The notes under the pieces: generated by a model
The model's input: only the letters and a program-made list of their open reading frames with translations
What the model was told of the DNA's origin: nothing
Databases searched by the model: none
Origin: Octopus bimaculoides
Taxonomy: Eukaryota
Assembly: GCF_001194135.2 (NCBI RefSeq)
Contig: NC_068985.1
Span: forward strand, 40,758,573-40,822,572
Direction: 5' to 3'
DNA length: 64,000 bases
Part shown: one piece after another, positions 6,372 through 55,969 of the stretch
Position numbering within the stretch: position 1 is the stretch's first letter
Layout: each line of letters begins with the position of its first letter
Translations under genes and position numbers: made by a program

Positions 6372-6981
6372 GTAATTCACTAAAATTCATCTCTTTCCAT
6401 CCTAATCTAGGGTTGGTTCTAAGTCCAGTTGCCTAAATGGTAGTTAAAAAAGTATTTGCTTTGCAATTATATGGTTCCTGCTTTGAACTAATGTGGCACC
6501 TTAGATAACTTCAGGTAAACCGAAGCCTTGCAAGTAAAATTAGGCAGGTGGCAAGAATATGGAAGCCTTTTGAATTGATTGTATATGTTCTCTTGGAGGC
6601 AAACCTAATCTGCTACTTGGTTTAATTCTGCTAAATGAAAACAAGTGCATTAAGTAGAGTTCAGTATTCAGACCAAGAAAAACTTCAAATTTGATGAGGT
6701 GAAAATCTACCCAGTTTCATCCCTCAGGCATTAATGAAATGAATCTCAGTATTATAGTAGAGTGATTGAATGATATAATATACTGAAAGATATATCTGTA
6801 GATTTTTTAGTCAACACTGTATGTATATCAAATTATTGTTTGCACCTTGTACAGTAAGATCTGGAATGAATATTTGCACATTTATTCTTAATGTCTAGGC
6901 AGGTTCAGACGCAAAATATTCTGGTTGTTGTAATGTATGTCAAGGAGAAAAATCTCTTTTATGACTCATTGGCACAGAGAA

Positions 6982-7024
6982 TTCTGGTACACTGATGTTT
7001 CAACATGTGTCTCATCAGCCACAA
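6982..7024 (-). ncRNA. Degenerate minimal type-I hammerhead ribozyme motif
   Basis: Minus strand reads ttgtgg CTGATGA gac-acat-gtt GAAA c-atcagt-GTA ccagaa. Stem I pairs 5/6, stem II is 3 bp opening with G.U, cleavage triplet GUA. Confidence 0.45.
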
Positions 7025-7984
7025 GTGCCTTGACTCTTTGAGTCTAGCCAAGCAGATGGTCTTTGTTTATATTTTCAGTGATTAAAATGTTTCCTGATTG
7101 GTGCTTATATCTGCCAATTAATATAAAATTGTTGTTTGTACCATGTACAGCGAGATCTAGAATGAATATTTGCATATTTATTCTGTATGACAGGTAGAAA
7201 TAAATACTTTGTCTTTATATATATCTTTGTGGATAAAGAGGAATCAGCTAGACTAGTTCCAATACTGTGCTGTGATTTCATCAGTGACGAAGTATTCTTG
7301 TTAATGGCCATGTAGACATTGCTCATAAACCCATGAAGATATTGTTTAAATAGACAAGGTGTTTGCATTTGTCTAAATCTACACATATATTCTGTTCTTC
7401 AGTATAGCATAGAAACAGACACTGTAAGTGTACCAAGAATTTATAGAGTGGTTTGAATTAGAGTATTATTCAGTCCAAGAAGAGAGAATGTTCATAATCC
7501 CTCCATGCCTTTTCAGACAGGTAAGAAGAATGTGATTAATGTTTATCTAGAAATTGTTCCAACTAATACCCGTAGTGAAAACATGAACAAACAGAAAGCT
7601 CCAGAAAGTGAAAGTGTTAGAAAGGCACAATTATGCAATGTGTTTGCCATGGAAGCCTGATAGTAGGGAAAAATTATATGGCATTTGAGAAGAAGAGACT
7701 GAAATGGATTTGCAGCAAGAGCAAAAATAGATAAATGTGTTTTATTGCAAAAACACTTTGAATGCTCAGTGTTTGATCACTGTACCTATATTTGGCATCA
7801 CTTGTCAATAAGTCTCTCCATAGATGCTTGATCTACTACAAATAGCAGCAAAAGGACACATTGAATATTGGCACAGGTACATTATTCCAAAAGAAAGGTC
7901 AGAATAGTCATGGCTGAAATTGCTTTTGATAAGTCCATCTACTCTGTCTGAGTTAACTCAGTCTGTCAAAAAGAAACTTAGCAC

Positions 7985-8198
7985 TGCTTGGTAATAAGTT
8001 ATACTGTACATCTATAAAATACTTGATTAGAAAGTTAGGTATCATTCTGAACATTTATAAAATGCCTGATCTCAAGATAAGGAGTCATATTGCTCTTGTA
8101 TAAAATACTTGACCGTTTGGTAAGTCGTCATACTATGGATTTGAAAAATATTTGATCTCTTGGACAGGAGTCATACAAAGTCTTTATAAAATTCTTGA
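7985..8198. repeat. Old 43-bp minisatellite with conserved TATAAAAT(A/G/T)C(T/C)TGA block
   Basis: Motif starts at 8013, 8056, 8099, 8142 (tgaaaaatatttga variant) and 8185, an exact period of 43. A second block (g/c)tcata is also periodic. Confidence 0.8.
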
Positions 8199-9776
8199 CT
8201 TCACTTTACCAGTCAATCTCTGGTCTTCTACAATACTTTTCTTCTACACAGATAATACATGTTTGGCTTTTTTAATTTTACTACTTTACATAGGTTAAGA
8301 GAGCATGGCTGTCTGTGTGGATAGTAAACCAGTCAACCAGTCCACCATTTGTATCCTGTCAGCAGTCCTGCTTTTTGGCTATTGTCAACATAGTTAGTTC
8401 TCAAAAGACCCAGTCTAGTTAGCTGAAAATGTTCATCAATGAATAAAAGCAACCCCACTATTCCAAGTAATGGTGACCCTGGAAAATCGACATTAGTTTT
8501 CACCACTGTAGAGGAATAGCCTCTGCCTTATTGAATTGAACTAAATATACTGCACAAACACAGTCTTCAGTGGTGATCATGAGAATAGACCAAAAAGTAA
8601 CAAAACAAACAAAACACACTTCATGGCAAAATTGGATGATGTTATTAATTTTACTTATTTGGACATTTTAATGTGGTCATAGCTACTGATCTATTTGCCA
8701 AATGCTAACCACTATCTAACTAAATGCTACAACTATCTAACTACTTAACCATGAAAGAATAAAGGAGACTATTTGTCAGATAGAGACTTTTCAAAATTTG
8801 TTTTTGGTTGGAGTAGTGGAGTTTCCTCCATTCATGACCTTTTTCTGTAGTGTTTGGTGAGAGAATAGGAGCTAGAAATCACATCTCATAGGTTGGGCTG
8901 CTGCAGTAGGAAGCAGCTCATTACAATATCAAGTTTATTCTGAGACTGATGATATGGTTTTGATTCTGAACTCTGCTAAATGCACTTGGTTTCATTTAGC
9001 TGACTTAAATTGAATTAAAACCTTGCATCAAAATTTGATGTTAATTTATGTTCCAAACTTGAGGTTAATAATGACAAAGTTAGTTTACTAAATTCTTCAT
9101 TATTTTCAAAATTAATTGAAATAAAAGAAGTATATTTCAATGAAAATATGATAACAAGAGTGTTAAATATATAATATTCATATTTATTAACATTATTCCA
9201 TTCTGTATTTATGCTGTAGTAAGATTTGACTATCAACCTAATACTAGTAGGCAACTTAAGCTGTACTATTCACAATCTTCTTTACATTTTCTATAAGTAG
9301 CTCTGTACTTTTTAACTTCTGCAACTTGGAAGACAGAGGCAAATGATTAGTCTGGAGGCTGTAATGAAAGAACAAACCTAGTTGGATCAGTCCCCATTCT
9401 AATCTGCTGAAAAGCCCCAGGGTTTAATCATGTCCATTTTCATAGCAAGATGAAAATCTCTTTTTATTAAACATCTATAGATATGATTCTGTTTACAGAT
9501 TTTATAAAAAGTATTTTAGTTTGGTGTTTACCATTTTTACTGACTTATTGTCCTCAAGCCAATGAAGCAGCCTCTATATGGTCACTCAACCTGTCTTAAA
9601 AAAGAAGTGATGGTACTGTGTAGTCATAGGTGAACAATAAGACTTGATTGTCATGGCTGGAAAGCCTTAAGTCTTAGGTATGCTTAATCAGGCCTGAGCT
9701 GCAGCTAAACTACAATAACAGCTTATCACTTGTTTATGGAAAATATTGATTATGTTTTGTTATTTTTTCTTTCAAG

Positions 9777-9833
9777 CAACTAGAAATGAAACTGAAAGAT
9801 TCTGAAGAAATAATCAAAGAACTCTATGAGAAG
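9777..9833 (+). CDS. Coding exon (QLEMKLKDSEEIIKELYEK), coiled-coil
   Basis: Acceptor ttttttctttcaAG, 57 nt open, AAG|GTAAAT donor. Phase 0/0, heptad-like L/I/E/K pattern. Confidence 0.8.
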
Positions 9834-9905
9834 GTAAATAAATATATTGTTTCTGTTTGGAGATTTTCCTCTCCTGTGCCTGGGGAGTTGATTATCTTTG
9901 AAGCA

Positions 9906-9951
<46 letters not shown>

Positions 9952-10222
9952 TGGGGATCATTTAAAGAATATTATGAATATGATGTTATTGTTTAGCCAA
10001 GAATTTCTCAACCTTTTTTCTCTTGTCACCCACTTTTCATTATTTTACATCTCCAAACCCATATCCAGCAGAGATCACTCTACAAGTGCACCTCAAGTAC
10101 ATCAACAAATTCAATCCAACTCATGCCAGCATGGAAAAGTGAACGTTAAAAATAATGATGATACAAACTCACACATATAGTTTGTTTTTGACTTTCTATA
10201 TGTGTGCATTATTATTATCATT

Positions 10223-10257
<35 letters not shown>

Positions 10258-10309
10258 TAAAGTTTTCTGAAATCTTAACCCTTTTTTTGTTTTTCTTCCC
10301 ATCATGCAG

Positions 10310-10393
10310 CTGGATAATGTGATGCAAGACTTGAAGTCTGAGAAAGAAGAATGTGATCGTTTGAAACAATTAACCACGGCAACTGGAACACTT
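10310..10393 (+). CDS. Coding exon (LDNVMQDLKSEKEECDRLKQLTTATGTL), coiled-coil
   Basis: Long pyrimidine tract plus cAG at 10308-10309, 84 nt open, CTT|GTAAGT donor. Phase 0/0. Confidence 0.8.
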
Positions 10394-10555
10394 GTAAGTG
10401 AACAGCATTTTTTTATCCTGCTCTACTGCATCCTTCTTGGTCATTTATACCTCCATACTCAAATATCGGCCCAAACTCCACTAGGCTGTGTCGTTTTGTT
10501 GTTATTCTTGTTGTTTAGCTCCAAGCTGGTTCTGAATATGTGTTTCTTTTTTAAG

Positions 10556-10595
10556 ACTGTTGGTGATTCTTTGAAGAACTTGGCAACTTCTACTG
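10556..10595 (+). CDS. Candidate 40-nt cassette exon (TVGDSLKNLATST+g), frameshifting
   Basis: Acceptor tttcttttttaAG (10554-10555) and consensus CTG|GTAAGT donor at 10596. Length 3n+1. Confidence 0.45.
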
Positions 10596-10599
10596 GTAA

Positions 10600-11290
10600 G
10601 TGAGACTCACATGGAGTATTGCTTCCAAATCACCTCCACCAACTTTTACATACTCCCTCAACAATACCAATCTCAACATATCTATCAGTGAATGTGATCT
10701 GGGTATTATTGTCAACAGTAATCTGCATTGGATAAACCACATCTCGAAGATTGTCAAGAAGGCTGAGGGTGTCTTAGCATCACTCAGTAAGACCTTTGTC
10801 AGCTGCTCTCCAGCTATCTGTTTAAAGTTGTATATGACTATTGTATGTCCATACTTAGAGTTTGCATCACCAGTCTGGAATCCCTATCTTGCTCAGCATA
10901 TCAATCTCCTGGAAACTGTTCAGAAACATGCAACCAAAGGAATTCCAGCCATCAGGCATCTACCATACTCTGAACATCTTGCTTCCCTGGGCATGGACAC
11001 ATTAAAGCTGACGTCTGGCAACTGACTTGGTAGATAGATACCCACAAGATTATCCATCATCTTTCCAACAACAACCTTGGGTATCTTTTTGAATTCCATA
11101 CATCTAACACTCATAGACATGCTTACAAAATAAAAAAAACAATACAGCACCCATGACTTTTGGAAACATTTTTTCGTGCTCAGGATTGCTGAACCATGGA
11201 ATAAACTACATACATCAGTTGTTAGTAGTTGAAATTCTACATCCTTCAAAACTTCCATGCTTCCAGAAATTCGCCAACAGTACACCTGAT
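10600..11290 (+). mobile_element. 5'-truncated CR1/L2-like LINE, ORF2 C-terminus
   Basis: ECDLGIIVNSNLHWINHISKIVKKA, PYLEFASPVWNPY, LETVQKHATK and LPYSEHLASLG, then frameshifted HFF..RIAEPWNKL. Confidence 0.9.
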
Positions 11291-11913
11291 ACCCCCTACC
11301 CCTGTTTCTTCTTCCCTTTTCTTTTTTTTTAAAGACCTTTTCACTGGTCATTCCCTGTGCATATTCTATGTACTGTTCATGCAGTTTTGGTTACTTTTCC
11401 TGATGAGTTGTAGTGCACCTGGGCACTGTATACCATAAGATCATTATATATCATTATATTCTGTTGATACTACCTCCAGTTATTCTACTCTATAAACTAT
11501 GTCATCACAATTACCACACCTTGTCTTTCCACAACCTCACTATGGCAGACAACCAGCCCAGCCTAGTGATACACTTCTGTCATCTCTTTATATAAATAAA
11601 TAAGCAAACACTTCAGTCTTTACATTTAGATAGAACCTTTAGCATTCATATTACCCTTTCAAATGTAATGCTTATTTGTTTACATTGTTTTTACTTAATC
11701 ATGCATTATCTCATAGCATTGAGATTTCAATGGTATGATTGTTTATCTTTAGAATGACATTGTAGGGTAGGTGTGAGGGACCAGATTCTAACTGGTTTGA
11801 ATAGAAAATAGGTAGAGTATTTGGGTTGGATATGGCCAGTTTAAATTCTAAGGTGTCAATACTGGGGACTTATTTCCTTTGTTAATTTCTTTTTTTTTTT
11901 TTTACATTTACAG

Positions 11914-12117
11914 AATACTATGATGGCATCCACCAGCAGAAGCTGTTCTACTGCATGTCAACTGTATTCTAAGCCATGCATTCAACCTTCTGAGCTACAA
12001 GTCGATTGTGCATTGAAGAGCACTGTGAGAAATAATGAGTGCTTAGTTTGTCAGCAAACCTTTAAAAACGAGGCAGATTTGAAAGAACATCAGAAGAGAT
12101 ATCATTTAAACAAATGA
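11914..12117 (+). CDS. Last coding exon with C2H2 zinc finger (CLVCQQTFKNEADLKEHQKRYH), stop TGA
   Basis: Poly-T tract plus cAG at 11912-11913. Phase 0 gives 67 aa containing C-x2-C-x3-F-x5-L-x2-H-x4-H. Confidence 0.8.
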   Translation, partial: NTMMASTSRSCSTACQLYSKPCIQPSELQVDCALKSTVRNNECLVCQQTFKNEADLKEHQKRYHLNK

Positions 12118-12946
12118 GTATATGTATAACTAGTGTGGTTAGACACTGCTTTTTTTCTGTGTAACACATCAAAGTGCACAGTATGCTCTCACAGACCATA
12201 GCATCATTCTGTATTGACTTGTGATGCAAACATTTTTACCGAAACTGACTGAAGGTGACAAAATCCAAATTCCTGGATTTTAGCATGAAGCCATAGTATG
12301 CAAGTAACGATTCACACATACACACACGCACGTGCACACACACACACACACAGGTATGCATATGAGAAGCCTTTTTTCAGCATCCATATACCAATGTTCC
12401 ATTCACTCACAAGGCTTTGATTGGCCCAGGGTTATAGAAGTCATGCACTCAAGGTGCTGTACAGTAGGATTGAACCCAAAACTACGTGGTTTGAAAGGAA
12501 ACTTTCTTTTCTTTAACCATAATGTGTGTGTTTGACTGCATGGCTGTGTGGTTAAGAAGCTTGCTTCCAACCATGTGGTCCCCACTGCATGACACCTTGG
12601 ATGGGTGTGTTCTATAGCCTTGGGCTGACCAAAGCTTTGTGAGTGGATTTGGTAGATGGAAACTGAAAGAAGTGTGTTGTATATATATTTATATGTGTCC
12701 CTTGTTTCCACATCGTGTGATGATGGTAAATAAGCATCACTGTCATACAAGTGATGCTGTTCATTTTTCTGTTCTCTGTCATGAAATATTACTTTGCTTG
12801 GAATAGGAAGGATATTTGTCACATTGAAAATTTGCTTCAATAAATTCCATCTGCTCTACCATTCAATCACAAATAAGACAACTTTAAATGAATAATAGGT
12901 TACACACACACATAATATACATACACACACACATATATACACATAG

Positions 12947-12983
<37 letters not shown>

Positions 12984-13023
12984 AATAAATGGAGTTAAAC
13001 GCAGCTGTTATTCAAATTCTTTT

Positions 13024-13112
13024 ACTTCCGACACATGTTTCGAAGATATCACTGGTATTATTCCAAAGGAATAAAATAATGTAAAACAATGTAATCCTCT
13101 CTTCAGGGAAAT
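13024..13112 (-). ncRNA. Minimal type-I hammerhead ribozyme (left arm, minus strand)
   Basis: Mirror image of 13459-13547. The stem III loop is ATGT instead of ACGT. Confidence 0.7.
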
Positions 13113-13458
13113 GAAGAAATGAAACTCGTCAATAATACATTTTAACAGAATATGATGGATATGTATAGTGATTAACTGAATGCTGTTAAGTTTGTTTTAA
13201 AATAACATTAGAAGATATAACGTCAAAGGTAGCCTATAGAATGAGGAGGGGTAAAGGAAGCATGGTTGGAAGCAAGCTTCTTAACCACACAGCCATGTAG
13301 TCAAACAGACTTTCCTTTACCCCTCCTCATTCTATAGGCTACCTTTGACGTTATATCCTCTAACATTATTTTAAAACAAATTTAACGGCATTCAGTTAAT
13401 CACTATACATATCCATCATATTCTGTTAAAATGTATTATTGACGAGTTTCATTTCTTC

Positions 13459-13547
13459 ATTTCCCTGAAGAGAGGATTACATTGTTTTACATTATTTTAT
13501 TCCTTTGGAATAATACCAGTGATATCTTCGAAACACGTGTCGGAAGT
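13459..13547 (+). ncRNA. Minimal type-I hammerhead ribozyme (Penelope/retrozyme type)
   Basis: atttcc (13459-13464), CTGAAGA (13465-13471), stem II gaggat/atcttc, GAAA (13530-13533), C-ACGT-G-T-C, then ggaagt (13542-13547). Predicted cleavage 3' of C13541. Confidence 0.8.
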
Positions 13548-13876
13548 AAAAGAATTTGAATAACACCTGCGTATAACTCCATTTATTTATTTATATATAT
13601 TATACAAAATATTTCACGTAAACCTGGAGTTTCTACCTTTAATAACAAGGAGCTGCACCCTTTTTTACTTGTGTGATTTTTTGCTACCCTGATAACTATT
13701 TNNNNNNNNNNNNNNNNNNNNNNNNNNNNNNNNNNNNNNNNNNNNNNNNNNNNNNNNNNNNNNNNNNNNNNNNNNNNNNNNNNNNNNNNNNNNNNNNNNN
13801 NNNNNNNNNNNNNNNNNNNNNNNNNNNNNNNNNNNNNNNNNNNNNNNNNNNNNNNNNNNNNNNNNNNNNNNNATAT

Positions 13877-13917
<41 letters not shown>

Positions 13918-14763
13918 CATACATACACATATATACATACATGCATACACATATATACATACATACCTATCATATCTATATATATACATATCATACATTC
14001 ATATCTATACCTATATATATATATATATATACATACATGATGGCTGTCCACTCGTGACCGAGGAAGACCATTGCCGACCTTCAGGAACATTCTGCGCTCT
14101 AGTACTAACTTACATTTTGCATTTACGGGTCCGTTGGTGGCTAATGAGCCCTGCTCTTGATAACTATCACATACATACATACATACATACATACATATCA
14201 TCATACGCACATATATATGGAGTAGAGTGCATTTATGGCCTAGGTAATTTGCAAAATTTAAGCAGAAACAAGCTAAGAGAAATAACATAGTCCTTGATGG
14301 AATGTATTTGATCAACAAACATAGGCATTCACAAGTCTGTTAAATACCACACAACATAAATTTTTGATTTTATTATCTCTGCCTCGGGAGGCTGTGTCAT
14401 GACTACCAAATGGCAATTAAGACTGTTCTCTTATCTCCAATAAGCCTGTCTTTTTCTTTAATGGCCTATCAAGTTTGGAGAATTCTTGATTTTTTTTGAG
14501 ATCATCTCCCCTTACCATATGAAGCTGATCTTAATTGCTTTTTGGTAATTATGACCCATCCTAGGGGTAGAGATAATTTTAACGAATCCACAATTTATGT
14601 TGTGTATTATTTAATATACTTGTAATTGTCTATGCTGTTCCAAAACATGCAACAGATCACTCTTAATTATGCAAATTACCTAAGCCATAAATGTATTTTA
14701 CTCTTTTTGTATATGTTGTATATGTCTAAGTCTTGACTACCAGCTGTTAAGTGGGACAATTGC

Positions 14764-14803
14764 CATGCTGATGATGCCTACTGGGGCAGAAATACATTCC
14801 ATG
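14764..14803 (+). ncRNA. Hammerhead-like motif with degenerate stem III
   Basis: catg CTGATGA tgcc-tactgg-ggca GAAA tacat TC catg. Stems I and II are perfect 4 bp, position 15.2/16.2 is a U.U mismatch. Confidence 0.5.
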
Positions 14804-15959
14804 ACTGTCTTCTTATTTATAGACAATAAACCTGTGCTTTGACTTAACAGCATGATAACTTTTGAGAATCCTTGTTTCTTCTGGCTATGTTTGCTTCTCA
14901 TATTGATCTGGCTTTAATTGCTTTTTGCTAATTATAATACATCCTCTACAGGTGGAGATAATGCTAATAAATCTGGACTAAGAACCTTTGTGGGATAGTT
15001 TTTAATATACTTTTGTGTGTCTGAGTGTGTGTGGGTGTATGTTCACACACACGGGTTTGTATGATTCTGTGTATAAGAATATATTAATCAATGAAATTCT
15101 AACCTCATCTGATTTTCACATTTTATTTTTTACAATTTTACAATAATATATGAATAGAATATGATATATTTATTGTGATAAAACTAGTACTTTTACATAC
15201 ATACATACATTGATTGATGGAGGCGACTGCAGGTCATCAGTATCACTCAGGCTCATCACAGATTTCGCATAAGACACATGCCTGCTTGAAGAGTTTCACA
15301 TTTTTTTGCTCTATTTCTAGCTCCAAATGGCTTATTTTTTATATCTAGTACTATGTTAAGGGTAAAAATAAAGCAACACTGCAAAACACAGCTGATCTTT
15401 ACACACAGACGCACAGAATAACAGCAATCAAATAACGACAGTGGAGTGCACAACAAACATCGGCGATCTGACTGTCACCTGTATTCTTGACAAGAGATGC
15501 CAGTTAGCCTTTTACACCTTCCAGGCTCATTCATATTAGCCCGAGTTGCTGCATAATTTTTTGTTCTTTTAAGAATATTGTAGAATGGAAACTTTTCATA
15601 TATTGCAATTTAAATCCTAATCTCTGAAAAAATTTATTGTTTCAAGGAAACATTGAATTTGAATTACTTTTAATATTTATGATTATAGATAACAACTCAG
15701 GCTGTAATTTCTGAGCCCAAGTCAGGCACATGCAAATGATGTCGAGAGAACGTTTGCTACAAATGATATTTTTTGACACTGGGCACCTCTAAGAGACACT
15801 GAACGAAAATAACTGAACTGCGACCCTGCTCAATAAAAGGAGCCCAAGTTATTGGCTGCAATTACATACTTGAAGTCAGTGTTGGCACAAATTAAATCAG
15901 CTTGCAAATACACATTCACTTTACTAAATTCATACTCAGGCTAAGCCTGAACAGCCTGA

Positions 15960-15999
<40 letters not shown>

Positions 16000-16042
16000 G
16001 GTCAATGACCTAAAAGTGGCTTGTTATGGATTGGGACTGTTT

Positions 16043-16325
16043 TTGACCATTTAACACCCTACTACTATCATACTACCTACATTCCTTCTTATTCTCCCAT
16101 CTCTTTCTCCTTCTTCGTCTTCTTCCTCTCCACCACCTCCTTCCAAACTTTACCACTATTGCTGTTTAGAATAACACCTACCCAAATTTGATAAACAAAA
16201 CATTCAAAAGAGATGTCTCAAGAATTCAGTCACTACTACCATCCACAACTGGTTACTTTCAGGGCACTTGACCATTTAACATACTACTATCATGGCACTC
16301 CCACATTCTTATTCTTCTTCTCCCC
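16043..16325. repeat. ~222-225-bp unit repeat (1.3 copies), second locus at 31005-31290
   Basis: ttgaccatttaaca at 16043 and 16268, acattcaaaagagat at 31037 and 31259. Both loci share ctgtttagaataacacctac and other blocks. Confidence 0.8.
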
Positions 16326-16426
16326 CCCNNNNNNNNNNATGAGAGAGACAGAGACAGGCAGAAACAAGGAAAATGCCCCTTGTATTTGAATACTATGCAA
16401 ATATTCTTTTAAAAAAACTTTTCTTT

Positions 16427-16665
16427 TAGAAATAATACATTTCTAAATCTCTCAGAGAGATTTATGCAGTAGTGATGCGATAAAGTAGTTGTATGCTGTT
16501 AACTTAATGTGACAGCCCCAAGAAGTGGTGCTGCTTCCTACAGCTAAATAGCAGTAGTATTATTCCCTTCATGGGACTGTCACATTAAGTTGACAGCATA
16601 CAACTACTTTATCGCATCACTACTGCATAAATCTCTCTGAGAGATTTAGAAATGTATTATTTCTA
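16427..16665. repeat. Inverted repeat: arms 16427-16520 and 16572-16665, 51-bp spacer
   Basis: Hand alignment gives 92/94 matches. Confidence 0.95.
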
Positions 16666-16753
16666 TTTTTGAAATCAGTTAATGTGTTTTACTAGAATTA
16701 TTATATGTTTACAAGAGCTTGACAGGCATCTCCAACTAGTAGGCCATTGCTAC

Positions 16754-16797
16754 TCCAGACTGATGACAAGCAAAGACTCAGAAACATGTCTTTGGAT
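16754..16797 (+). ncRNA. Hammerhead-like motif with decayed stem II
   Basis: tccaga CTGATGA caag-caaaaga-ctca GAAAC at GTC tttgga. Stem I is 6 bp with one G.U, stem III region ACATGT is palindromic, only 2 of 4 stem II pairs remain. Confidence 0.5.
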
Positions 16798-17649
16798 GCC
16801 GACTTAGCTAAGTGGAGGTGCTTGTCTCCCCCTTGTAAACATAAGGACACAGGAAATGTGTCAAGGCCGACAGGAAGCGGTGCTGCTTCCTATGGCTAAA
16901 TAGCAGTAGTATTATTCCCTTCATGGGACTGTCACATTAAGTTGACAGCATACAACTACTTTTCTTATAATTTTTCCCAAATTCAATAGTTTTCCATACT
17001 TACAGTTGAAAAATGTCTCAATGACTGAAACCAGCACTGAAATGTTTTTTATAAAACAATTTTAGCATTTTCTACCTTGACTTTTTTATACACACACACA
17101 CACACACACACACGCGCACGCACACACACACACACACACACACACTGCTGTGTTTGGGACTAAATAACATGCAAACCCCGACAATTTTTATTATAATTTT
17201 ATAAAAACCAAAAAAATTTCTCCTTCCTCGAACTGTTGCAGTACTATTGAAATCTTTGTCTCTATAATGAATGTTAAAAGAAAACTGACCAATTGTGGTT
17301 AAAATGTTTATAATTACTGTATATTTAATTAAATGATTTGTTTCTTTGTATTTAATAAAATAAAATGATTCTACCAAAATAGAATGCAATTCAAAGTCTC
17401 AATTTATTTGCTCCTTTGTGTGGTGCATAAATATATGTGTGTGCCTGTACACACACGCAGTTACATACTTGAATGCTTATTTACATGTAGACGTTACTCC
17501 TTTACTCTGTCAGAAACAGATTATCAGATGCTCAGTTCATCATTCTCACTTTACTCTTCAAACATCCAAATGATGATTTTATTCCTAACATGTGATTCAG
17601 GTGAGAGTCAGGTGTAGAGGCATGTGCCATTACAGAACATTGCTGCATC

Positions 17650-22010: not shown

Positions 22011-22477
22011 AATTTTTGCTTCAGCAACTCAGGGCTAAATCTGTCTGTAATGTAATGAAAAACATGTCAGTTTCAAAACATTGATGTCCAGGTGATAAAA
22101 GCAAAGTTTGAAGGGAATTGTTGTCATTCCTTTTGATTTCTAGATAGAAGCAACAAAGGAAATAACATTGACCAAAGACAAAAAGAACAAAAATTTGTTA
22201 CAGTGTTGTTATTATGATTATTATATTGCATTCATATGGAAAATCAGAAGAATATCAGATTAAAAGCTTTGTATGCAATGTATTCAAATTCCATCAGAAT
22301 CAACTTTGTCTTTCATTTTTTTTTTTTGTTGGGGTGGGGGTTGATGTGGCTACATAACAATGTTAGAAATTGTAATTATTTTGGTTAAGAGTCAGAATAG
22401 AATGCTTCGTAGTATTGTGCTAATCATATTTTGAGGGCAATTTAATTGACCATACAAAATATATTGTGCAATATATA

Positions 22478-23502
22478 TAATATTGAGATCTGGGGACTGT
22501 GGTGGCCAGATAAGATGTTCAACTTCACTAGAATGTTCCTTGTGCCATTCAGTAACAACTTTAGCTGTGTGAATTGGTGCATTATCATCCTGAAAGACTG
22601 CGATTCCCTCTGGAAACAGTTCCACAACCATAGGATGAATTTGATCAGATAAAATGCTTAAATAGTCCTGACTATTAATTGTGCCATGAAGGGAAACCAT
22701 TGGGCCGGCATATTTCCAAGATATAGCCCCACCAGATCATCACAGATCCTCCTCCATGTTTAACAGTTAGAAGAAGGCAGTCTGGGTCAAATGCTTCTTT
22801 TGGCTGTCTCCACTCATATACTTGGCCGGTGGTCAAAAATAAGGTAAAGGATGACTTGTCTGAGAAAATGACATTCTTCCACTGCTATAGGGACCAATTC
22901 TGTAGGTTTTTACTCCACTCTAAACACTTTGCAACGTTTGTTTTTGAAAGTTGTGGTTTTCTGATTGCAGTTGTCCCATGAAATCCGGCTTTGTGCAGCT
23001 CCCGGCAAACAGTTTTTATGGAAACTGGGTTCTCAAGGTGGTCATTAAGCTCTGCAGTAATTTTGGGAGCTGTACCTTTGTGATTCTTTCTAAAAATTCG
23101 CATAAGAGTCTGATGGTCCTTCTCTGAAAGTTTTGGTTTTCTTCTGGAGTTTTGGTTCGACGAGGAGGTTTTTCCCTCTTTCTCAAAGGCTGGCATTACT
23201 TTCAAGACAGTACTTCTTAATACACCAAACATTTCGGCTGTTTTCGTTATATTAGCATCTGCCATATGAGTACCAACAATTTGACCTCTTTCAAAGTCCG
23301 ATAGATCTGTCATTTTAATGAATTTTAATTACCTTTTTCTGATGATATCTGAAAAGAAACAGCGATTTTAGCAAAACATATTAAGCAACACTAATAATAA
23401 ATCAAAAAACATAAAACCAAACAAGCTTTTGATGGTTTTATAGATATTTCAAATTTATGATGCTATGATGCTGGGTGTTTCTATTATTTTGTCCAGCTCC
23501 TG
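22478..23502 (-). mobile_element. Tc1/mariner transposon, degenerate, 3' end truncated
   Basis: Transposase from ATG 23313 (MTDLSDFERGQIVG), VIFSDKS, VKHGGGSVMIW, FQDDNAPIH and WPPQSPDLNII, then cut off. One TIR TA|CAGGAGCTGGACAAAATAATAGAAACACCC ends at 23502. Confidence 0.93.
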
Positions 23503-29692: not shown

Positions 29693-30990
29693 ACATCACA
29701 TCAAAAAAGAATTCGTGATAGAAGGGCTAAAATTTATCTTGGAGAATAACTACTTCGTCTTCAAAGACAACTTCTATCGTCAAAAATCGGGGACTGCGAT
29801 GGCTACGAGAATGGCCCTCTCCTTTGCTAACCTAGTCATGGGATATTTAGAAATTAGTCTTTATCGTAAGGTTCTAGAAAAATATAGCAGCCCATTCTCC
29901 CTCTAAATAGAAAATAACTGAAGGAGATACCTGGATGACTGTTTCATTCTTTGGCATGAAAGTATAGAGACTTAAAGAATTTCAAGCACTTATAAATGGA
30001 CTTGACGTAAACATTCAATTCGTGATGGAATATAGCCATCAACAACTTTCCTTCCTCGACATCCTCATTAAGAAATCTAACAACGTAATAGAAACAGATA
30101 TATATTATAAGCCCATGGACTCCAAGCAATATCTACCGTTCAACTCATGCCACCTCAGAATGAATATCCCCTTCAACCTAGCAAAAAGGATATGTACTAT
30201 AGTTTCTAATGCAAGCACCAGGGATACACGACTACATGAACTAAAGGATACACTCATCACCAGGAACTACTCACCATCACTAATGGACATATGCTTTCAA
30301 CGTGCCCTACAACTCAACATCCACGAACGCAGACATCCAAAATTAAAGAAGGATTTACAACCAAAAACCCTACCATACATCTTCACACACAACCCTCTTA
30401 ACAATGAAGCCTTCTACACCATCTTTCTAAACATTCCCCTGCTAAAAAAGACCTCAGAATGAACTTAATCCTCCAAACACACACCATCATAACAAGCAAG
30501 AGACCGCCCAAATTTATGAAAAGTCTCCTAACACATGCCCGAATAAGCTCAACAACAACATTGAAGCCGTCAGTAAAAAATGCGGAAAACCCAACTGTGG
30601 GATAAGTGTCAATTTAATTGAGGGATCAGTGTTCTCCTTCAAACAGGGACAATGTTTCACAGTGAAAAGCAGCTTCACATGTGCTTTGGAGAACCTGATA
30701 TACACACTAACCCTGCTCTGGGTGTCAAAAGTTATACATAGGCCAAACAAAAAAGTCTACTTCAAAGGATGGCTCCGCACAGATCCCAGATCAAAATTCC
30801 AAAAAAACCAGAAAAATAGCATTCAGTCAACGCATCGACATTTGCGCCAATAACAAAGATCCAAGCTTCAGAATTTCCCCCCTCTATCAATTCAGGGACG
30901 ATACAACCTGTAGCCAACGAATTAGTAAAGAGGCCCTCTTTATTACAAAATATAGACCTCTTTTGAACGCATCCACAAGAAATGACATAT
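29693..30990 (+). mobile_element. Penelope-like element (Neptune-like) RT + GIY-YIG fossil
   Basis: ILENNYFVF, YRQKSGTAMATRMALSFANLVMG, RYLDDCFILW, LSFLDILI, TDIYYKPMDSKQYL and NLIYTL..C..KLYIGQT-like endonuclease motif. Stops and frameshifts present. Confidence 0.9.
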
Positions 30991-31339
30991 CCCCCACGAC
31001 CTTAGAATAAACACACACGCAAATATTAAGAATGATACATTCAAAAGAGATACCCAAGAATTAATTAAAAACAGTCTCAATCACTGCTATAATCCACAAC
31101 GAGCCACTTTTAGGCCACTTGACCATTTAACAACCTACTACTATCCTGCCATTCTGCATTTTCTTATTATTCTGTCTCCTTCTTCCTCTCTGCCACTTCC
31201 TTCCTTCTTTACTACTACTGCTGTTTAGAATAACACCTACGCAAATATTATAAACAATACATTCAAAAGAGATATCTTAAGAATTCAATCAATACAAAGT
31301 ATTGGAATAATATTTATGCTTGAGGAGGGCAAAAGATAA

Positions 31340-32652
31340 AAGAGGAAATTAACGTGTAAAAGAGTTGGTAGTTCTTGACAGGAAAGAATTATAGGGAGAA
31401 GGTAGGCTAGCAGAGAAAGTAGCTTAGGTGTATTAATTATTTATTGATAATGTGGGTTGGGGTAGGCCAGCGTAAGATATGTAAATTTTTATTTATTTAT
31501 AATGTGGGTTGGATAGTTAGGTTAGGGAAGGTAATAAGCTGATAATTAGGTCTGCTAATGACATTTAAGCTAGGAGATAGTGGTGTTTATAGGAATGAGT
31601 GGGTTTAACGAAACTTAGAGAATACAAATCTGCTTTTATGCAGACAAAAAAAAAATGATTTTCATATTTCTTATTGAGTAGAAGTGATTTGGCCATTAAT
31701 ATTAGTAGTTTTTCTGTTTCACAGAACTGACAGCGCTTACTTTTAATGGTATAAGACAAAGTTTTTGCTAGGATACACCATTCTAAACTATAGTTGATTT
31801 TTTTTTTGTCTTTTAGTTCCCAAATGTAGCTACTACGTCCTGTAGAGTTTGCTTTACTTCTATTTCTAAATGTAGATTGGTGGGAATTGTATCTAAGAAT
31901 CATTTCATTTTTCGTGGCTACTATATAAGATTTCGTATGGTTATTGGTGAGTACGGTGCATTGGTATATTACGTTTTTTATTTTATACCTATTGGAGAAT
32001 TGACACTTATTTCTGTCTCTGCAGCCACATAAATTATTCGGTTTATCTGTGCTTATGTTATGTTGAGGGGCGTAATTATTTATCAGGTCCGTGTTGTTTG
32101 TGGGTGGGCTATCAGGGACGAGATTAATTCCATTTGCTTGTTGGCTGTTATGTTTTATGCAGGTATTTTTCCCAGTTTCGTAGAAAGCGTCTAGCTTATT
32201 ATTGTTGATCGAGGCTATGATGGTAGCTAGGTTACTAGTAAGGCCATGGCTAACTCTAATTTTATTCTTAATGATTCCTGAATATCTGTTATTCAAGTTC
32301 AAGTGCTTATCTATAAGTCTCAGTATGGAGTGAACTCTGTTAGATTTAAGCTGCATCGCATCGGGGATTATTAATCAGATCTTATCGCTATTTCGTTTAT
32401 TTTTAATATTATTAATTTTGGTGTAGAAGCTATCCTCAGTATTCGTGTAGAGTGTAAAGTTGCTGTTATAGTTATTATATTTCTTTCTATAGTTATTTTT
32501 ATTTTTATTATTGTTAGTGTGGGGGTTTTATTGGGGTTATTTCTGTACGATTTTCTTAAGTTATATGGCTTGGTGTTATCAATCTTCGCTGGGGTTATAT
32601 TAGTTCTTTGGGTTTCGTTGTTTTTATTCTTATTAATATTAAGATTTATTAC

Positions 32653-32717
<65 letters not shown>

Positions 32718-33530
32718 TTATTAGTCGTGTTAGTATTCTTAATTTTATTAATTTTCACATTTTTGGTATTAGTTTTGTTATCATTTTTAATGTTAGTTAT
32801 CTTAGTTTGAATCTTGGCATTGTTTTTTGACATTATTGTTATTAATCTTATCTATGTTGTTCATATTTCTAATGTAGTTATTAGTTTCGTTTGGATTGTG
32901 GTTAGTGTTGTGGTAATTGTCTTGGGCATTTATGTTATTCCGGTTATTTGTATAGTGTTCTAAGTCTAGGTATTTAATTTTTTGTTTGTACCCTGATTTT
33001 TCTAATGCGCTATTGTAGAAATCCTTATACTTATTGAAGATATCTAGGTTAGAGGCGAGATGTGAAGTTCTTTTGCTAATGCTATTTACTAACCCTCTTT
33101 TAATAAAGTTTGGATGGTTACTGGATGTGCTTATATACTTGAGGTTTGTATTAGGTATTATGTAGGGTTCGTGGAGTCCCGTGGCTAGGTTGCAGTTGGC
33201 GTCTTGGTAATTTGTAGAGGTATGTTCCTTTTCTATAGTAATAGTTAGGCCAAATCTTTTTAAAAATTTATATAGTTTTTTCTTAATGAGTTCTAATCTC
33301 CTATTAGAGACATTTTTAGTATGAATAGTGCATCGTCCCTATATAGCCCACTCTTGATTTCTGGGAATTCTTCCTGTAGGTATGATAACAAATAAATACC
33401 TACTAAGTCTGTTACCTGTGCTAAATCTGGGGCTCCCATGGTGATATCGAAGTTATTAGGGGCGTCTTTTCTTTCCCATAGTTTATTATCGAAAGGTATT
33501 ACTGATTTTCTCACTTCTAAGGTTACATTA
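31340..33530 (-). mobile_element. Penelope-like element (Naiad-like) RT + C-terminal GIY-YIG fossil
   Basis: FDITMGAPDLAQVTDLVGIYLL, GLYRDDAL, CGCRDRNKC, NVIYQCTV..SYIV, RYNSHQSTFRN, YIWELK, RCQFCETEK..LLNK and CLHKSRF. Clade name is from recalled motifs. Confidence 0.85.
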
Positions 33531-33578
33531 ATTTCTTCCCTCGTCTTTATATATTTATATACATATATATATATTTAT

Positions 33579-53995: not shown

Positions 53996-54716
53996 AACAG
54001 CCCTTCGGCCGGTCAACTCCTGTTAAACCATCCAACTCATGCTAGCATGGAAAACAGATGTTGTATGATGATGATGATTNNNNNNNNNNNNNNNNNNNNN
54101 NNNNNNNNNNNNNNNNNNNNNNNNNNNNNNNNNNNNNNNNNNNNNNNNNNNNNNNNNNNNNNNNNNNNNNNNNNNNNNNNNNNNNNNNNNNNNNNNNNNN
54201 NNNNNNNNNNNNNNNNNNNNNNNNNNNNNNNNNNNNNNNNNNNNNNNNNNNNNNNNNNNNNNNNNNNNNNNNNNNNNNNNNNNNNNNNNNNNNNNNNNNN
54301 NNNNNNNNNNNNNNNNNNNNNNNNNNNNNNNNNNNNNNNNNNNNNNNNNNNNNNNNNNNNNNNNNNNNNNNNNNNNNNNNNNNNNNNNNNNNNNNNNNNN
54401 NNNNNNNNNNNNNNNNNNNNNNNNNNNNNNNNNNNNNNNNNNNNNNNNNNNNNNNNNNNNNNNNNNNNNNNNNNNNNNNNNNNNNNNNNNNNNNNNNNNN
54501 NNNNNNNNNNNNNNNNNNNNNNNNNNNNNNNNNNNNNNNNNNNNNNNNNNNNNNNNNNNNNNNNNNNNNNNNNNNNNNNNNNNNNNNNNNNNNNNNNNNN
54601 NNNNNNNNNNNNNNNNNNNNNNNNNNNNNNNNNNNNNNNNNNNNNNNNNNNNNNNNNNNNNNNNNNNNNNNNNNNNNNNNNNNNNNNNNNNNNNNNNNNN
54701 NNNNNNNNNNNNNNNG

Positions 54717-54985
54717 GCTTGCCGGGTCTTCTCACGCACAGCACATTTCCAAAGGTTTCGGTCAGTAGTCATCGCCTCGGTGAGGCCCAATGTACGAAGG
54801 TCTTGCCTCACCACCTCAGCCCAGGTCTTCCTGGGCCTACCTCTTCCACGGGTTCCCTCAACTGTTAGGGTGTGGCACTTTTTCACGCAGCTATCCTCCT
54901 CCATTCTCACCACATGTCCATACCAGCGCAATTGTCTCTCTTGCACACCACAACTGATGCTTCTAATGTTCAGCTTTTGTCTCAA
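54717..54985 (-). mobile_element. RTE LINE ORF2 3' end (relatively intact)
   Basis: VQERQLRWYGHVVRM...GTRGRGRPRKTW..V..DL...DRNLWK. Cut by an N gap. Confidence 0.9.
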
Positions 54986-55969
54986 GATACTATATGTATA
55001 TAGTGATTTGGAAACAGAGATCAAAAGATTAAGTACCAAGTTTTAAAAAGTACTGGGGTCAATTTGTTTGACTAAAATTCGTCAGGGTGGTGCCCCAGCA
55101 TGACACCACCCTCACAGTTTTGAGATTTTGAAGCTGTGATAGTTTATTTGAGAATGACATTGTAGGGTAGGTATGAGAAAACAGATCTGGCCAGTTTGAA
55201 CATATAACATGTAGAATATTTGGGCTGGATATGGCCTGTTTAAATACTAAAGTGTCAATGCTCACTCTTCCATACTTGCATGGGCCAGACAAAGTTTATT
55301 GAGGCAGATTTTCTATGGCTGACTGCCCTTCCTATCACCAACCCTTACCTGTTTCCAAGCAAAGTAATATTTCTCCATGGCCAGACATGTTTTTGCAGTA
55401 TATTAGAAATAAATGACATTCACATACAACAATCATGTGATGCCAAGACAAGGGGACATAAACATTCTCACTCACTCACTCACTCACACACTCACTCACA
55501 CACTCACACACACACTCACACACACAATCACACTCACACACACACACACACACACACACAGAGTCTGTCAGGCATTGCCCTCTTCTGCCAATTTAAATGT
55601 TATTGGAATGAAGCACTGTTGTTATCTGCAAATGTTTGTTCAGCTGCTGCTGGAGGGGGAGGGTGTTGTCTTGAAATAGTGTTGGTCATGTTCAGTCTGA
55701 GCCATTTTTTTTACTTTATTACTATGGATGGTCCAACTTGGGGCATTAGTATCAGATTCTTGATGGCATTGCTCTCAGAGTCATTGAATCAAGCAAGCCC
55801 ACAACCATCAGAGTGTACACACATACATAATGTTTCTAACGAGCAAGACAAAAAGTACACAATACATGGTACAGAGTATAATTACATTTATTTGGCTGAT
55901 GCTGGCTCCTGTTATTTTAAGTTTCACATGAATGTGAAAGTAAAATAATGGCAAGTGCCATCAGTTGAA

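Follow-up and report, generated by a model that had tools for sequence, protein, structure and literature searches.

Does a cluster of short hammerhead ribozyme motifs among the repeats of an octopus genome mark a family of mobile elements, or is their company accidental? The question is raised by a 64-kb stretch of the Octopus bimaculoides genome (hereafter the window). The original prediction, made from the letters of this window, described five hammerhead motifs within local repeats and attributed them to several families of ribozyme-bearing retroelements mobilised by Penelope-like elements (PLEs), in the manner of animal retrozymes or of the pseudo-long terminal repeats (pLTRs) of PLEs themselves. 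We find that one of these families, family B, hosts a credible hammerhead, while the motifs of the other three are marginal individually. Our preferred reading, in which we place slightly more belief than doubt, is that the window captures an octopus intron with several short insertions of the PLE or retrozyme type that lack an open reading frame (ORF). Family B would bear an intact type-I hammerhead, and families C and D, and less clearly family A, would be insertions of the same kind. The five strings are listed here with the names used below.

6982-7024, minus strand: c1, hammerhead-like string at chance level, matched only by a relaxed descriptor
13024-13112, minus strand: c2, hammerhead in the left copy of family B, matched by the descriptor
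13459-13547, plus strand: c3, type-I hammerhead in the right copy of family B, matched by the descriptor and by Rfam
14764-14803, plus strand: c4, marginal hammerhead-like string at the end of a family C unit, matched by the descriptor
16754-16796, plus strand: c5, broken hammerhead-like string, found only by a descriptor without helix II

All five strings (CTGANGA...GAAA...UH) lie where the original prediction had put them, as a direct reading of the window bears out, and each contains the conserved type-I core that we tested (C3-U4-G5-A6-N7-G8-A9 ... G12-A13-A14 ... A15.1-U16.1-H17). The presence of this core carries little weight, because it was part of how the strings were picked. Nor do the strings amount to five independent motifs. 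The correct number is four, because c2 and c3 are the two arms of one inverted repeat. The sequence contexts of the four motifs (families A, B, C and D, hosting c1, c2 with c3, c4 and c5, respectively) had been described as unrelated to each other, and blastn agrees; it finds no further copies of these contexts in the window outside the local repeats.

The units of the four families measure 296 bp (A), at least 417 bp (B), 383 bp (C) and 352 bp (D), with a GC content of 0.31-0.39 and no ORF. Direct repeats had been predicted at offsets of about 296, about 383 and 352 bp and are found at 296, 383-391 and 352 bp, and the inverted repeats predicted at three loci are those of families B, C and D. 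It had also been noted that no reverse transcriptase (RT) ORF is attached to the motifs; this is correct, as tblastn detects no PLE coding remnant in 6.5-17.3 kb. The six-frame peptides of units A-D, concatenated, have zero matches at E-values up to 10 in a database of 5.8 billion proteins, and an exact look-up of two ORFs from the window found no record.

How many such motifs would be expected by chance? We ran a type-I descriptor (the core, a helix II of 3 bp or more, A15.1 paired with U16.1 and their loop limited to 8 nt, UH, and a helix I without interruption) over both strands of the entire 64 kb, in a strict form with a helix I of at least 4 bp and in a relaxed form with 3 bp. All matches are confined to the region of the prediction, i.e. 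three strict matches (c2, c3 and c4) and four relaxed ones, which add c1. Dinucleotide shuffles (n = 300) give expectations of 0.017-0.05 strict and 0.07-0.11 relaxed matches, against the three and four observed. The remaining string, c5, is recovered by a descriptor free of helix II that asks for a helix I of at least 5 bp, with a shuffle mean of 0.13. Real background sequence gives the same picture, with no descriptor match in 92 kb (the other 49.5 kb of the window and seven comparison loci, L001-L007), against 3-4 matches in the 10.6 kb of the predicted cluster. Taken as a set, the motifs are not a product of chance. It is also unlikely that c1, c4 and c5 are all chance matches together, given that their expectations sum to about 0.3 and three are observed, all of them inside local repeats.

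We compared the strings with the covariance model of the Rfam family Hammerhead_1 (RF00163; model positions 1-45, gathering score 34 bits). Rfam reports no hammerhead at the gathering score in the whole window, and none at E-values up to 10 in the 10.8-kb region. For motifs this short a whole-window search is uninformative, since its E-value includes a factor of 4227 for the number of families, and each candidate was therefore searched in a small slice. In its slice c3 matches RF00163 with 26.8 bits (E = 5.8e-05), with all 45 model positions aligned and every core base plus helices I and III intact. The score falls short of 34 bits because of a 54-nt insertion in helix II, which is the sole source of the lost bits, and standard Rfam annotation of the window therefore misses the family B hammerhead. 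For c1 the score is 11.3 bits (E = 4.6), and c4 and c5 have no hammerhead match in slices of 81-86 nt. The Infernal-type check proposed with the prediction thus supports c3, below the gathering score, and none of the other three. The prediction of several ribozyme families stands for B, on its full-model match, and is not supported for A, C and D, whose motifs are marginal or broken.

The structure of c3 can be described base by base. Helix I pairs AUUUCC with GGAAGU (13459-13464/13542-13547, 6 bp) and is extendable past a small internal loop. The core follows as CUGAAGA at 13465-13471 and GAAA at 13530-13533. Between these lies helix II (13472-13529), 58 nt that start from a G10.1-C11.1 pair and fold into an extended hairpin of -11.4 kcal/mol. 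Helix III and its loop are formed by ACACGUGU, i.e. 2 bp (A-U and C-G) with the palindromic loop ACGU, followed by C17. Self-cleavage of c3 is predicted after H17, here C 13541, that is, between 13541 and 13542. The fold constrained to the hammerhead has -19.5 kcal/mol and the minimum free energy (MFE) fold -21.2 kcal/mol, a gap of 1.7 kcal/mol. The helix III string ACACGUGU is self-complementary, an animal-type feature that permits two hammerheads to dimerise (Cervera and de la Pena 2014, PMC4209133).

A single base separates c2 from c3. It lies in loop 3 (CAUGUG for CACGUG) and is consistent with CpG-to-TpG decay. Both have the three helices with helix I open (6 bp, 6 bp plus extension, and 2 bp). 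A G10.1-C11.1 pair together with a palindromic 15.2-16.2/loop 3 is present in c3; c5 has the palindromic loop only, and c1 and c4 have neither. What is unusual about the family B hammerhead is its extended helix II of 58 nt. Its exact DNA pattern has no match in metagenome, viral and GTDB contig collections. A lower divergence of the two arms inside the hammerhead was considered and rejected; one of the nine mismatches falls in 89 of the 283 nt, which is non-significant.

Around this hammerhead the window contains two copies of a longer element and a spacer.

12977-13259, minus strand: left copy of family B, unit positions 1-283, with its outer end in a (TG)n/(CA)n tract
13260-13311, minus strand: fold-back spacer of 52 nt, in which the initial 50 nt of an octopus short interspersed nuclear element (SINE) occupy 13261-13310
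13312-13701, plus strand: right copy of family B, unit positions 1 to at least 390, entering an assembly gap at 13702

The copies are oriented 5' end to 5' end around the spacer and form an inverted repeat (12977-13259/13312-13594) with 283-nt arms of 97% identity (9 mismatches in 283 positions). The right copy has a GC content of 0.305 and no ORF, and the hammerhead occupies unit positions 148-236, in the middle of the unit. The SINE fragment in the spacer has the orientation of the left copy, is flush with both arms and is 96% complementary to 12526-12575, with further blastn matches at 37.8 and 39.7 kb. One may speculate that it is filler, left by a template switch onto SINE RNA that was followed by snap-back synthesis.

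A second octopus locus allows the ends of B to be examined. This locus, L007 (GCA_001194135.2 CM046613.1:28266496-28287077, O. bimaculoides, about 17-20 kb), is the only octopus locus compared. It was reached via the 263-aa endonuclease ORF of a PLE fossil in the window (fossil 2, see below), which is 70% identical to one annotated O. bimaculoides 'uncharacterized protein'. Many repeats are common to L007 and the window, at 72-98% identity, which bears out the cephalopod host that had been proposed. Two more B copies are found in L007, in opposite orientation and 875 bp apart; compared with the window they give blastn segments of 81-89% identity, and in gapped local alignments (225-235 columns) the left copy is 77% and the right copy 81% identical.

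The left L007 copy (8150-8415, minus strand) shares the inner boundary of the window arms, CTTTCCTTTACCCC..., and the DNA upstream of it is unrelated. Because this copy stops there, with unrelated DNA beyond, the boundary seen at 13312 is the true 5' end of B. This copy keeps CUGAUGA, has a 12-nt deletion in helix II and has lost GAAA and helix III. Its end lies about 155 nt short of the longest copies, and it resembles a retro-copy of a prematurely polyadenylated transcript. The right L007 copy is 5'-truncated inside helix II and has AAAA in place of GAAA, and it keeps a palindromic ACAUAUGU. At 9290-9494 it is collinear with the window to 13701 (85%), past the arm end through 13595-13701, and it runs about 27 nt beyond the window sequence before a SINE insertion, which is why the unit length of B is given as at least 417 nt. 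We take B to be a discrete, AT-rich element of 417 nt or more that has no ORF, occurs in several copies and begins at a fixed 5' end. Its presence in the 17 kb of octopus DNA compared, a single observation, suggests that it is abundant in the genome.

The other three families have the following parts.

6825-6893 and 7121-7189, no strand assigned: family A direct repeats, 69 nt, 296 bp apart, 86% identical
14193-14422, minus strand: family C partial copy in inverted orientation, covering unit positions about 109-305, with a (CATA)n tract on its left
14421-14803, plus strand: complete family C unit of 383 nt that ends with c4
14803-15022, plus strand: family C, partial repeat of the unit, with a (TG)n tract at its end
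16427-16525, minus strand: family D inverted partial copy, an arm of the 239-nt hairpin 16427-16665
16519-16870, plus strand: family D full unit, 352 nt, containing c5
16871-16962, plus strand: family D second partial unit, a direct repeat

Families C and D show the insertion architecture seen in B, and A shows it less clearly. C and D follow a common plan of an inverted partial copy, a full unit and a partial second unit. In family C the direct repeat (14421-14631/14803-15022, offset 383-391 bp) is 67% identical and is joined by an inverted repeat (14208-14422/14529-14715). In family D the direct repeat (16519-16610/16871-16962, offset 352 bp) is 96% identical and the inverted repeat (16427-16525/16567-16665, 99 nt) is 97% identical. 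The parts of C have 66-67% identity over full gapped alignments, with blocks of 77-87%. By these identities C is old (66-67%) and B and D are young (96-97%).

The original prediction had likened this mixture of partial tandems and inverted copies to PLE insertions, and the layout does match the published architecture of partial tandems, inverted copies, tails of 30-40 bp and a bias for microsatellites (Craig et al. 2021, PMC8557442). If the right end of each array is taken as the 3' end of the element, C and D would read as an inverted, 5'-truncated copy with its tail, a pLTR and a full unit. For this fit the tails must be 55-90 nt long, whereas those published measure 30-40 bp. The stretch 14208-14715 is also readable as a palindromic DNA element of 508 bp, with c4 outside it. 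We had also read the left arm of family C as a hammerhead minus helix II, a reading that the full alignment showed to go too far.

The hammerhead-like strings of A, C and D are degenerate, and by their sequences they may be either decayed relics or chance matches. The string c1 sits between the two direct repeats of family A. It pairs 5 of the 6 positions of helix I, its helix II has 3 bp with a closing G.U, a palindrome is absent, and in its MFE fold the core CUGAUG is paired with CAUCAG. In c4 a U-A pair occupies 10.1/11.1, and helix III has 1 bp with a non-palindromic 5-nt loop; cleavage is predicted after 14799, 3 nt before the second family C unit. The third, c5, has a helix I of 6 bp and a palindromic CAUG loop 3, and helix II is absent. 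The region of c5 at 16755-16792 also has a weak, non-significant SNORD44-like match (17.2 bits, E = 0.11), and its CUGAUGA can equally be read as a C box.

Are there PLEs nearby that could have moved these units? Two fossil RTs lie further along the window, and a further repeat, family E, occurs both beside one of them and among the hammerhead loci.

29694-31007, plus strand: PLE fossil 1, a frameshifted RT (motifs 4-7 and thumb) with a C-terminal GIY-YIG endonuclease, starting at a gap
31568-33574, minus strand: PLE fossil 2, an RT (YRDD), a low-complexity insert and a CxC linker with a GIY-YIG-like endonuclease
31002-31295, plus strand: family E at its PLE, about 1.3 units, whose start covers the final two codons and stop of fossil 1
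16043-16323, plus strand: family E without an ORF, a partial tandem with a unit of about 223 bp, adjoining a gap at 16329

We read both fossils, at 29.7-33.6 kb, as PLEs, given that an RT joined to a GIY-YIG domain is the PLE signature (PMC8557442). This call rests on the domains of their homologues and on motifs recognised by eye, because a Pfam search of the RT and endonuclease fragments gave nothing significant. In fossil 1 a six-frame reading of the endonuclease gives LIY...C..C...YIGQT, and its homologues carry PF00078 and PF26215. In fossil 2 the RT lies at 32805-33574 and the CxC linker and GIY-YIG-like domain in an intact ORF of 263 aa (31568-32356, minus strand), with an AT-rich low-complexity insert between them; its 3' region reaches to about 31331.

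Relatives of both fossils were compared. Fossil 1 has 75% DNA identity to a related cephalopod PLE in four Logan contigs (L002-L005), which are decayed and stop short of any endonuclease or hammerhead; L006 was too short to be of use. Another relative, at 6387-11169 of a 2.5-Mb ENA contig (L001), consists of two PLE copies head to head, 1.9 kb apart; it lacks the octopus SINE, and the descriptor detects no hammerhead within 20 kb. Fossil 2 is 84-85% identical at the DNA level to L007 10081-11056. That locus packs into 1.8 kb (9290-11056) a B copy and a PLE of the fossil 2 type, both 5'-truncated, together with a SINE insertion. In the window B and this type of PLE are 18 kb apart, and their closeness in L007 may reflect chance, a common target preference or high abundance.

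The original prediction had named RT lineages at 29.7-33.5 kb as candidate partners of the ribozyme units. That the fossils are of PLE type holds up; the partnership is without sequence support, because there is no PLE coding sequence in 6.5-17.3 kb and B matches the 3' region of neither fossil. For the same dissimilarity we rejected the idea that B is the pLTR of a neighbouring PLE type. Family E is a different case. At fossil 1 it starts with TTAGAATAA, with the stop of the endonuclease ORF at 31007, and the copy at 16043-16323 is 79% identical to 31119-31295 and 71.5% identical to 31002-31179. To judge from this match, family E is demonstrably a repeat of a PLE terminus that recurs at 16 kb without an ORF and as a partial tandem. 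No hammerhead core is found in it, even with one mismatch allowed.

How could an element such as B have come to look as it does? The steps that we propose are taken from published biology (PMC4209133, PMC7229834, PMC11167929 and bioRxiv 10.64898/2026.07.22.740005). If a B transcript contained two hammerheads, either as a tandem or joined by base-pairing of the self-complementary ACACGUGU, it would cut itself after C17, and the released unit RNA could be ligated into a circle. The RT and GIY-YIG endonuclease of a PLE, acting in trans, would then copy this RNA into AT-rich or microsatellite-rich DNA. PLE reverse transcription is known to start internally, and the endonuclease to prefer AT-rich DNA (PMC11167929); animal retrozymes have been described as non-autonomous PLE derivatives (bioRxiv 10.64898/2026.07.22.740005). 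Internal initiation with strand switching would give variable 3' ends, partial tandems and head-to-head inverted copies, and at the B locus the product would be the two 283-bp copies, 5' to 5', around 52 nt of filler from the 5' end of a SINE.

The B locus itself, like the others, is a dead-end insertion, because each locus has only one hammerhead per strand and none can release a unit by double self-cleavage. The MFE of the long hairpin is -459 kcal/mol for the B locus and -172 kcal/mol for the D locus (the 239-nt hairpin), and read-through transcription of these loci may give a long hairpin instead of a released unit. A bolder proposal is that B is a live retrozyme, the first from a cephalopod, with a circular RNA of about 420 nt, moved by an octopus Penelope, and with head-to-head insertions that yield hairpins feeding small-RNA pathways. 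We consider this improbable.

Several observations weigh against our preferred reading of PLE- or retrozyme-type insertions. Both L007 hammerheads are broken (in the right copy G12 is changed to A and the 5' half is missing), and the ribozyme may therefore not be conserved across family B. No compensatory pair change can be scored among the B copies, and the palindrome-preserving change from ACACGUGU to ACAUAUGU is explicable by CpG decay alone. In the left L007 copy an AAUAAA-like site is followed by a terminal A12, a pointer to a poly(A)-dependent route of the type used by long interspersed nuclear elements (LINEs). The 3' ends of B vary by more than 100 nt, against the published PLE tail of 30-40 bp, and B resembles the 3' region of neither PLE fossil. 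In the window and L007 there is no tandem array of B, no B copy adjoining an RT and no second locus for families A, C and D. Finally, c1, c4 and c5 score at or below chance level in Rfam and in shuffles when taken singly.

This last point leads to the explanation in which chance alone accounts for c1, c4 and c5, which would sit in unrelated repeats (local duplications, for example, or fold-back units like miniature inverted-repeat transposable elements, MITEs), leaving B as the only family connected with hammerheads. We rate it as a serious contender that falls somewhat short of an even chance. It gains from the Rfam results, from the missing helix II of c5, from the U-A pair of c4 and its lack of a usable helix III, and from the paired core of c1; the 508-bp palindrome leaves c4 outside, and the expectations of 0.05-0.13 per window for each string are not negligible. 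Set against this, the three matches exceed their summed expectation and have no counterpart in the 92 kb of real background. All three are inside partial-tandem units, c4 would be cleaved 3 nt from a unit junction, and c5 combines a 6-bp helix I with an animal-type palindromic loop 3. The fold-backs themselves may be doubted, as artefacts of assembly beside gaps, in which case the paired hammerheads would not be real. The assembly is indeed gap-rich, with 3857 N in the window, and the palindromes lie 88-108 nt from gaps. However, an artefactual duplicate would be identical, and the B arms differ at 9 of 283 positions; L007 likewise has two B copies in opposite orientation, and the motifs themselves do not depend on the palindromes. 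This explanation is hardly credible.

All the units could be solo or 5'-truncated termini, i.e. the pLTRs of autonomous PLEs located elsewhere, and thus PLE debris. Most animal PLE hammerheads are solo, derive from truncated PLEs and often form opposite-strand pairs (PMC4209133), about 30 Penelope families have been active recently in O. vulgaris (PMC13282606), with only two visible in the window, and family E is exactly such a case. Nevertheless we think this account rather unlikely. The window copy of B and the left L007 copy start at the same base, with unrelated, non-coding sequence upstream, and random 5' truncation of a 3-kb element would not produce the same start at independent loci; the lack of likeness between B and the 3' regions of both fossils tells in the same direction. 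A different proposal is that B is SINE-like and moved by LINEs through poly(A), with the hammerhead irrelevant to any PLE-type mobilisation. Schistosoma has hammerhead-bearing SINE-like repeats with which B may be compared on this proposal. The A12 tract of the left L007 copy suits it, as do the fixed 5' end of B, the one 5'-truncated copy and the LINE RT fragments in the window, and both LINEs and PLEs have been left as possible mobilisers of retrozymes (PMC7229834). Yet an A-run is present in only one of the four B copies, the other 3' ends lying in TA/TG tracts or being unread; tRNA-like A and B boxes are absent from the 5' region of B, as read by eye; and head-to-head pairs in a microsatellite context are PLE hallmarks. 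We judge the LINE-moved account to be quite improbable.

In favour of our preferred reading, the loci are flanked by (CA)n, (TA)n and (TG)n tracts. No motif or repeat spans a gap. The gap at 13702-13872 cuts the right B copy, and its far side begins in a (TA)n tract; a 10-N gap at 16329-16338 cuts family E, with unrelated sequence on its far side. The 3' end of B in the window is hidden in the first of these gaps, and the distances between loci are nominal. Open stretches with AG/GT borders at 9777-9833, 10310-10393 and 10556-10595 (plus strand) code for a coiled-coil-like peptide; they are probably exons of a host gene, and the hammerhead loci would therefore be intronic.

Other features of the window include C-terminal ORF fragments of LINE-type RTs at 10600-11025 (plus strand) and 54700-55039 (minus strand), read by eye and without a Pfam match. 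A Tc1/mariner transposase remnant lies at 22392-23313 on the minus strand (HTH_Tnp_Tc3_2, E = 3e-14; DDE_3, E = 6.5e-08). Permissive Rfam searches also report microRNAs that are spurious, MIR1507 on the fold-back at 13215-13355 (42 bits) and mir-297 on (TA/CA)n tracts (50 bits), which illustrates that inverted and simple repeats inflate microRNA counts.

How does family B compare with known hammerhead-bearing elements? Metazoan non-LTR retrozymes, including those of a mollusc, the mussel, were described by Cervera and de la Pena (2020, PMC7229834), and retrozymes also by Li et al. (2026, bioRxiv 10.64898/2026.07.22.740005). The four families resemble these in being short (the 150-450 bp class), AT-rich (GC below 45%) and ORF-less and in their co-occurrence with PLEs, and B does so in its canonical type-I hammerhead with a 6-bp helix I and a helix III of the 1-2 bp class with a palindromic loop, and in its dispersed copies, comparable to the monomeric 'offspring' of retrozymes. 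They differ in that no tandem with two or more hammerheads is seen, the loci here consisting of 1.2-1.6 units or of inverted pairs. The helix II of B is also 58 nt, against about 4 bp plus loop in metazoan retrozymes, and its fixed 5' end is not the cleavage site. Identity with metazoan non-LTR retrozymes, which had been suggested, is thus not sustained, as the defining direct tandem of two hammerheads is absent from every locus in the window and L007.

The hammerheads of PLE pLTRs are mostly solo and often come as pairs on opposite strands with 100-700 bp between them (Cervera and de la Pena 2014, PMC4209133). B shares with them the type-I fold, a long helix II, the G10.1-C11.1 pair and the palindromic helix III, and the loci likewise hold mostly solo motifs, opposite-strand pairs and partial tandems with an inverted copy near microsatellites. 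Unlike them, no unit adjoins an RT or endonuclease ORF, B is dissimilar to the termini of both fossils, and the sole proven PLE terminal repeat here, family E, is without a hammerhead core. In comparison with RF00163, c3 aligns fully and differs by its 54-nt helix II insertion, at 26.8 versus 34 bits. The satellite and SINE-like repeats of newts and Schistosoma are about 330 nt, dispersed or tandem, and have type-I hammerheads that dimerise via a palindromic helix III. They differ from B as seen here in forming abundant tandem arrays, with demonstrated transcripts and cleavage (cited in PMC7229834). We file B as working like retrozymes and pLTRs and not as a proven member of either, because no hammerhead tandem and no attachment to an RT or endonuclease was found in the window or L007.

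Much of the framework for these results is already published, namely hammerheads in PLE pLTRs (2014), metazoan retrozymes (2020) and the derivation of retrozymes from PLEs (a 2026 preprint). We found no paper describing cephalopod retrozymes. In the giant-squid genome paper (PMC6962438), 235 Rfam Hammerhead_1 loci are listed but not analysed. As a long helix II puts a canonical hammerhead under the Rfam threshold, cephalopod ribozyme counts such as this one are probably underestimates. The present work extends the known set of short retroelements with hammerheads and PLE links by an octopus family and leaves the understanding of such elements unchanged. If family B is active, it would provide a cephalopod system for studying circular-RNA retroelements.

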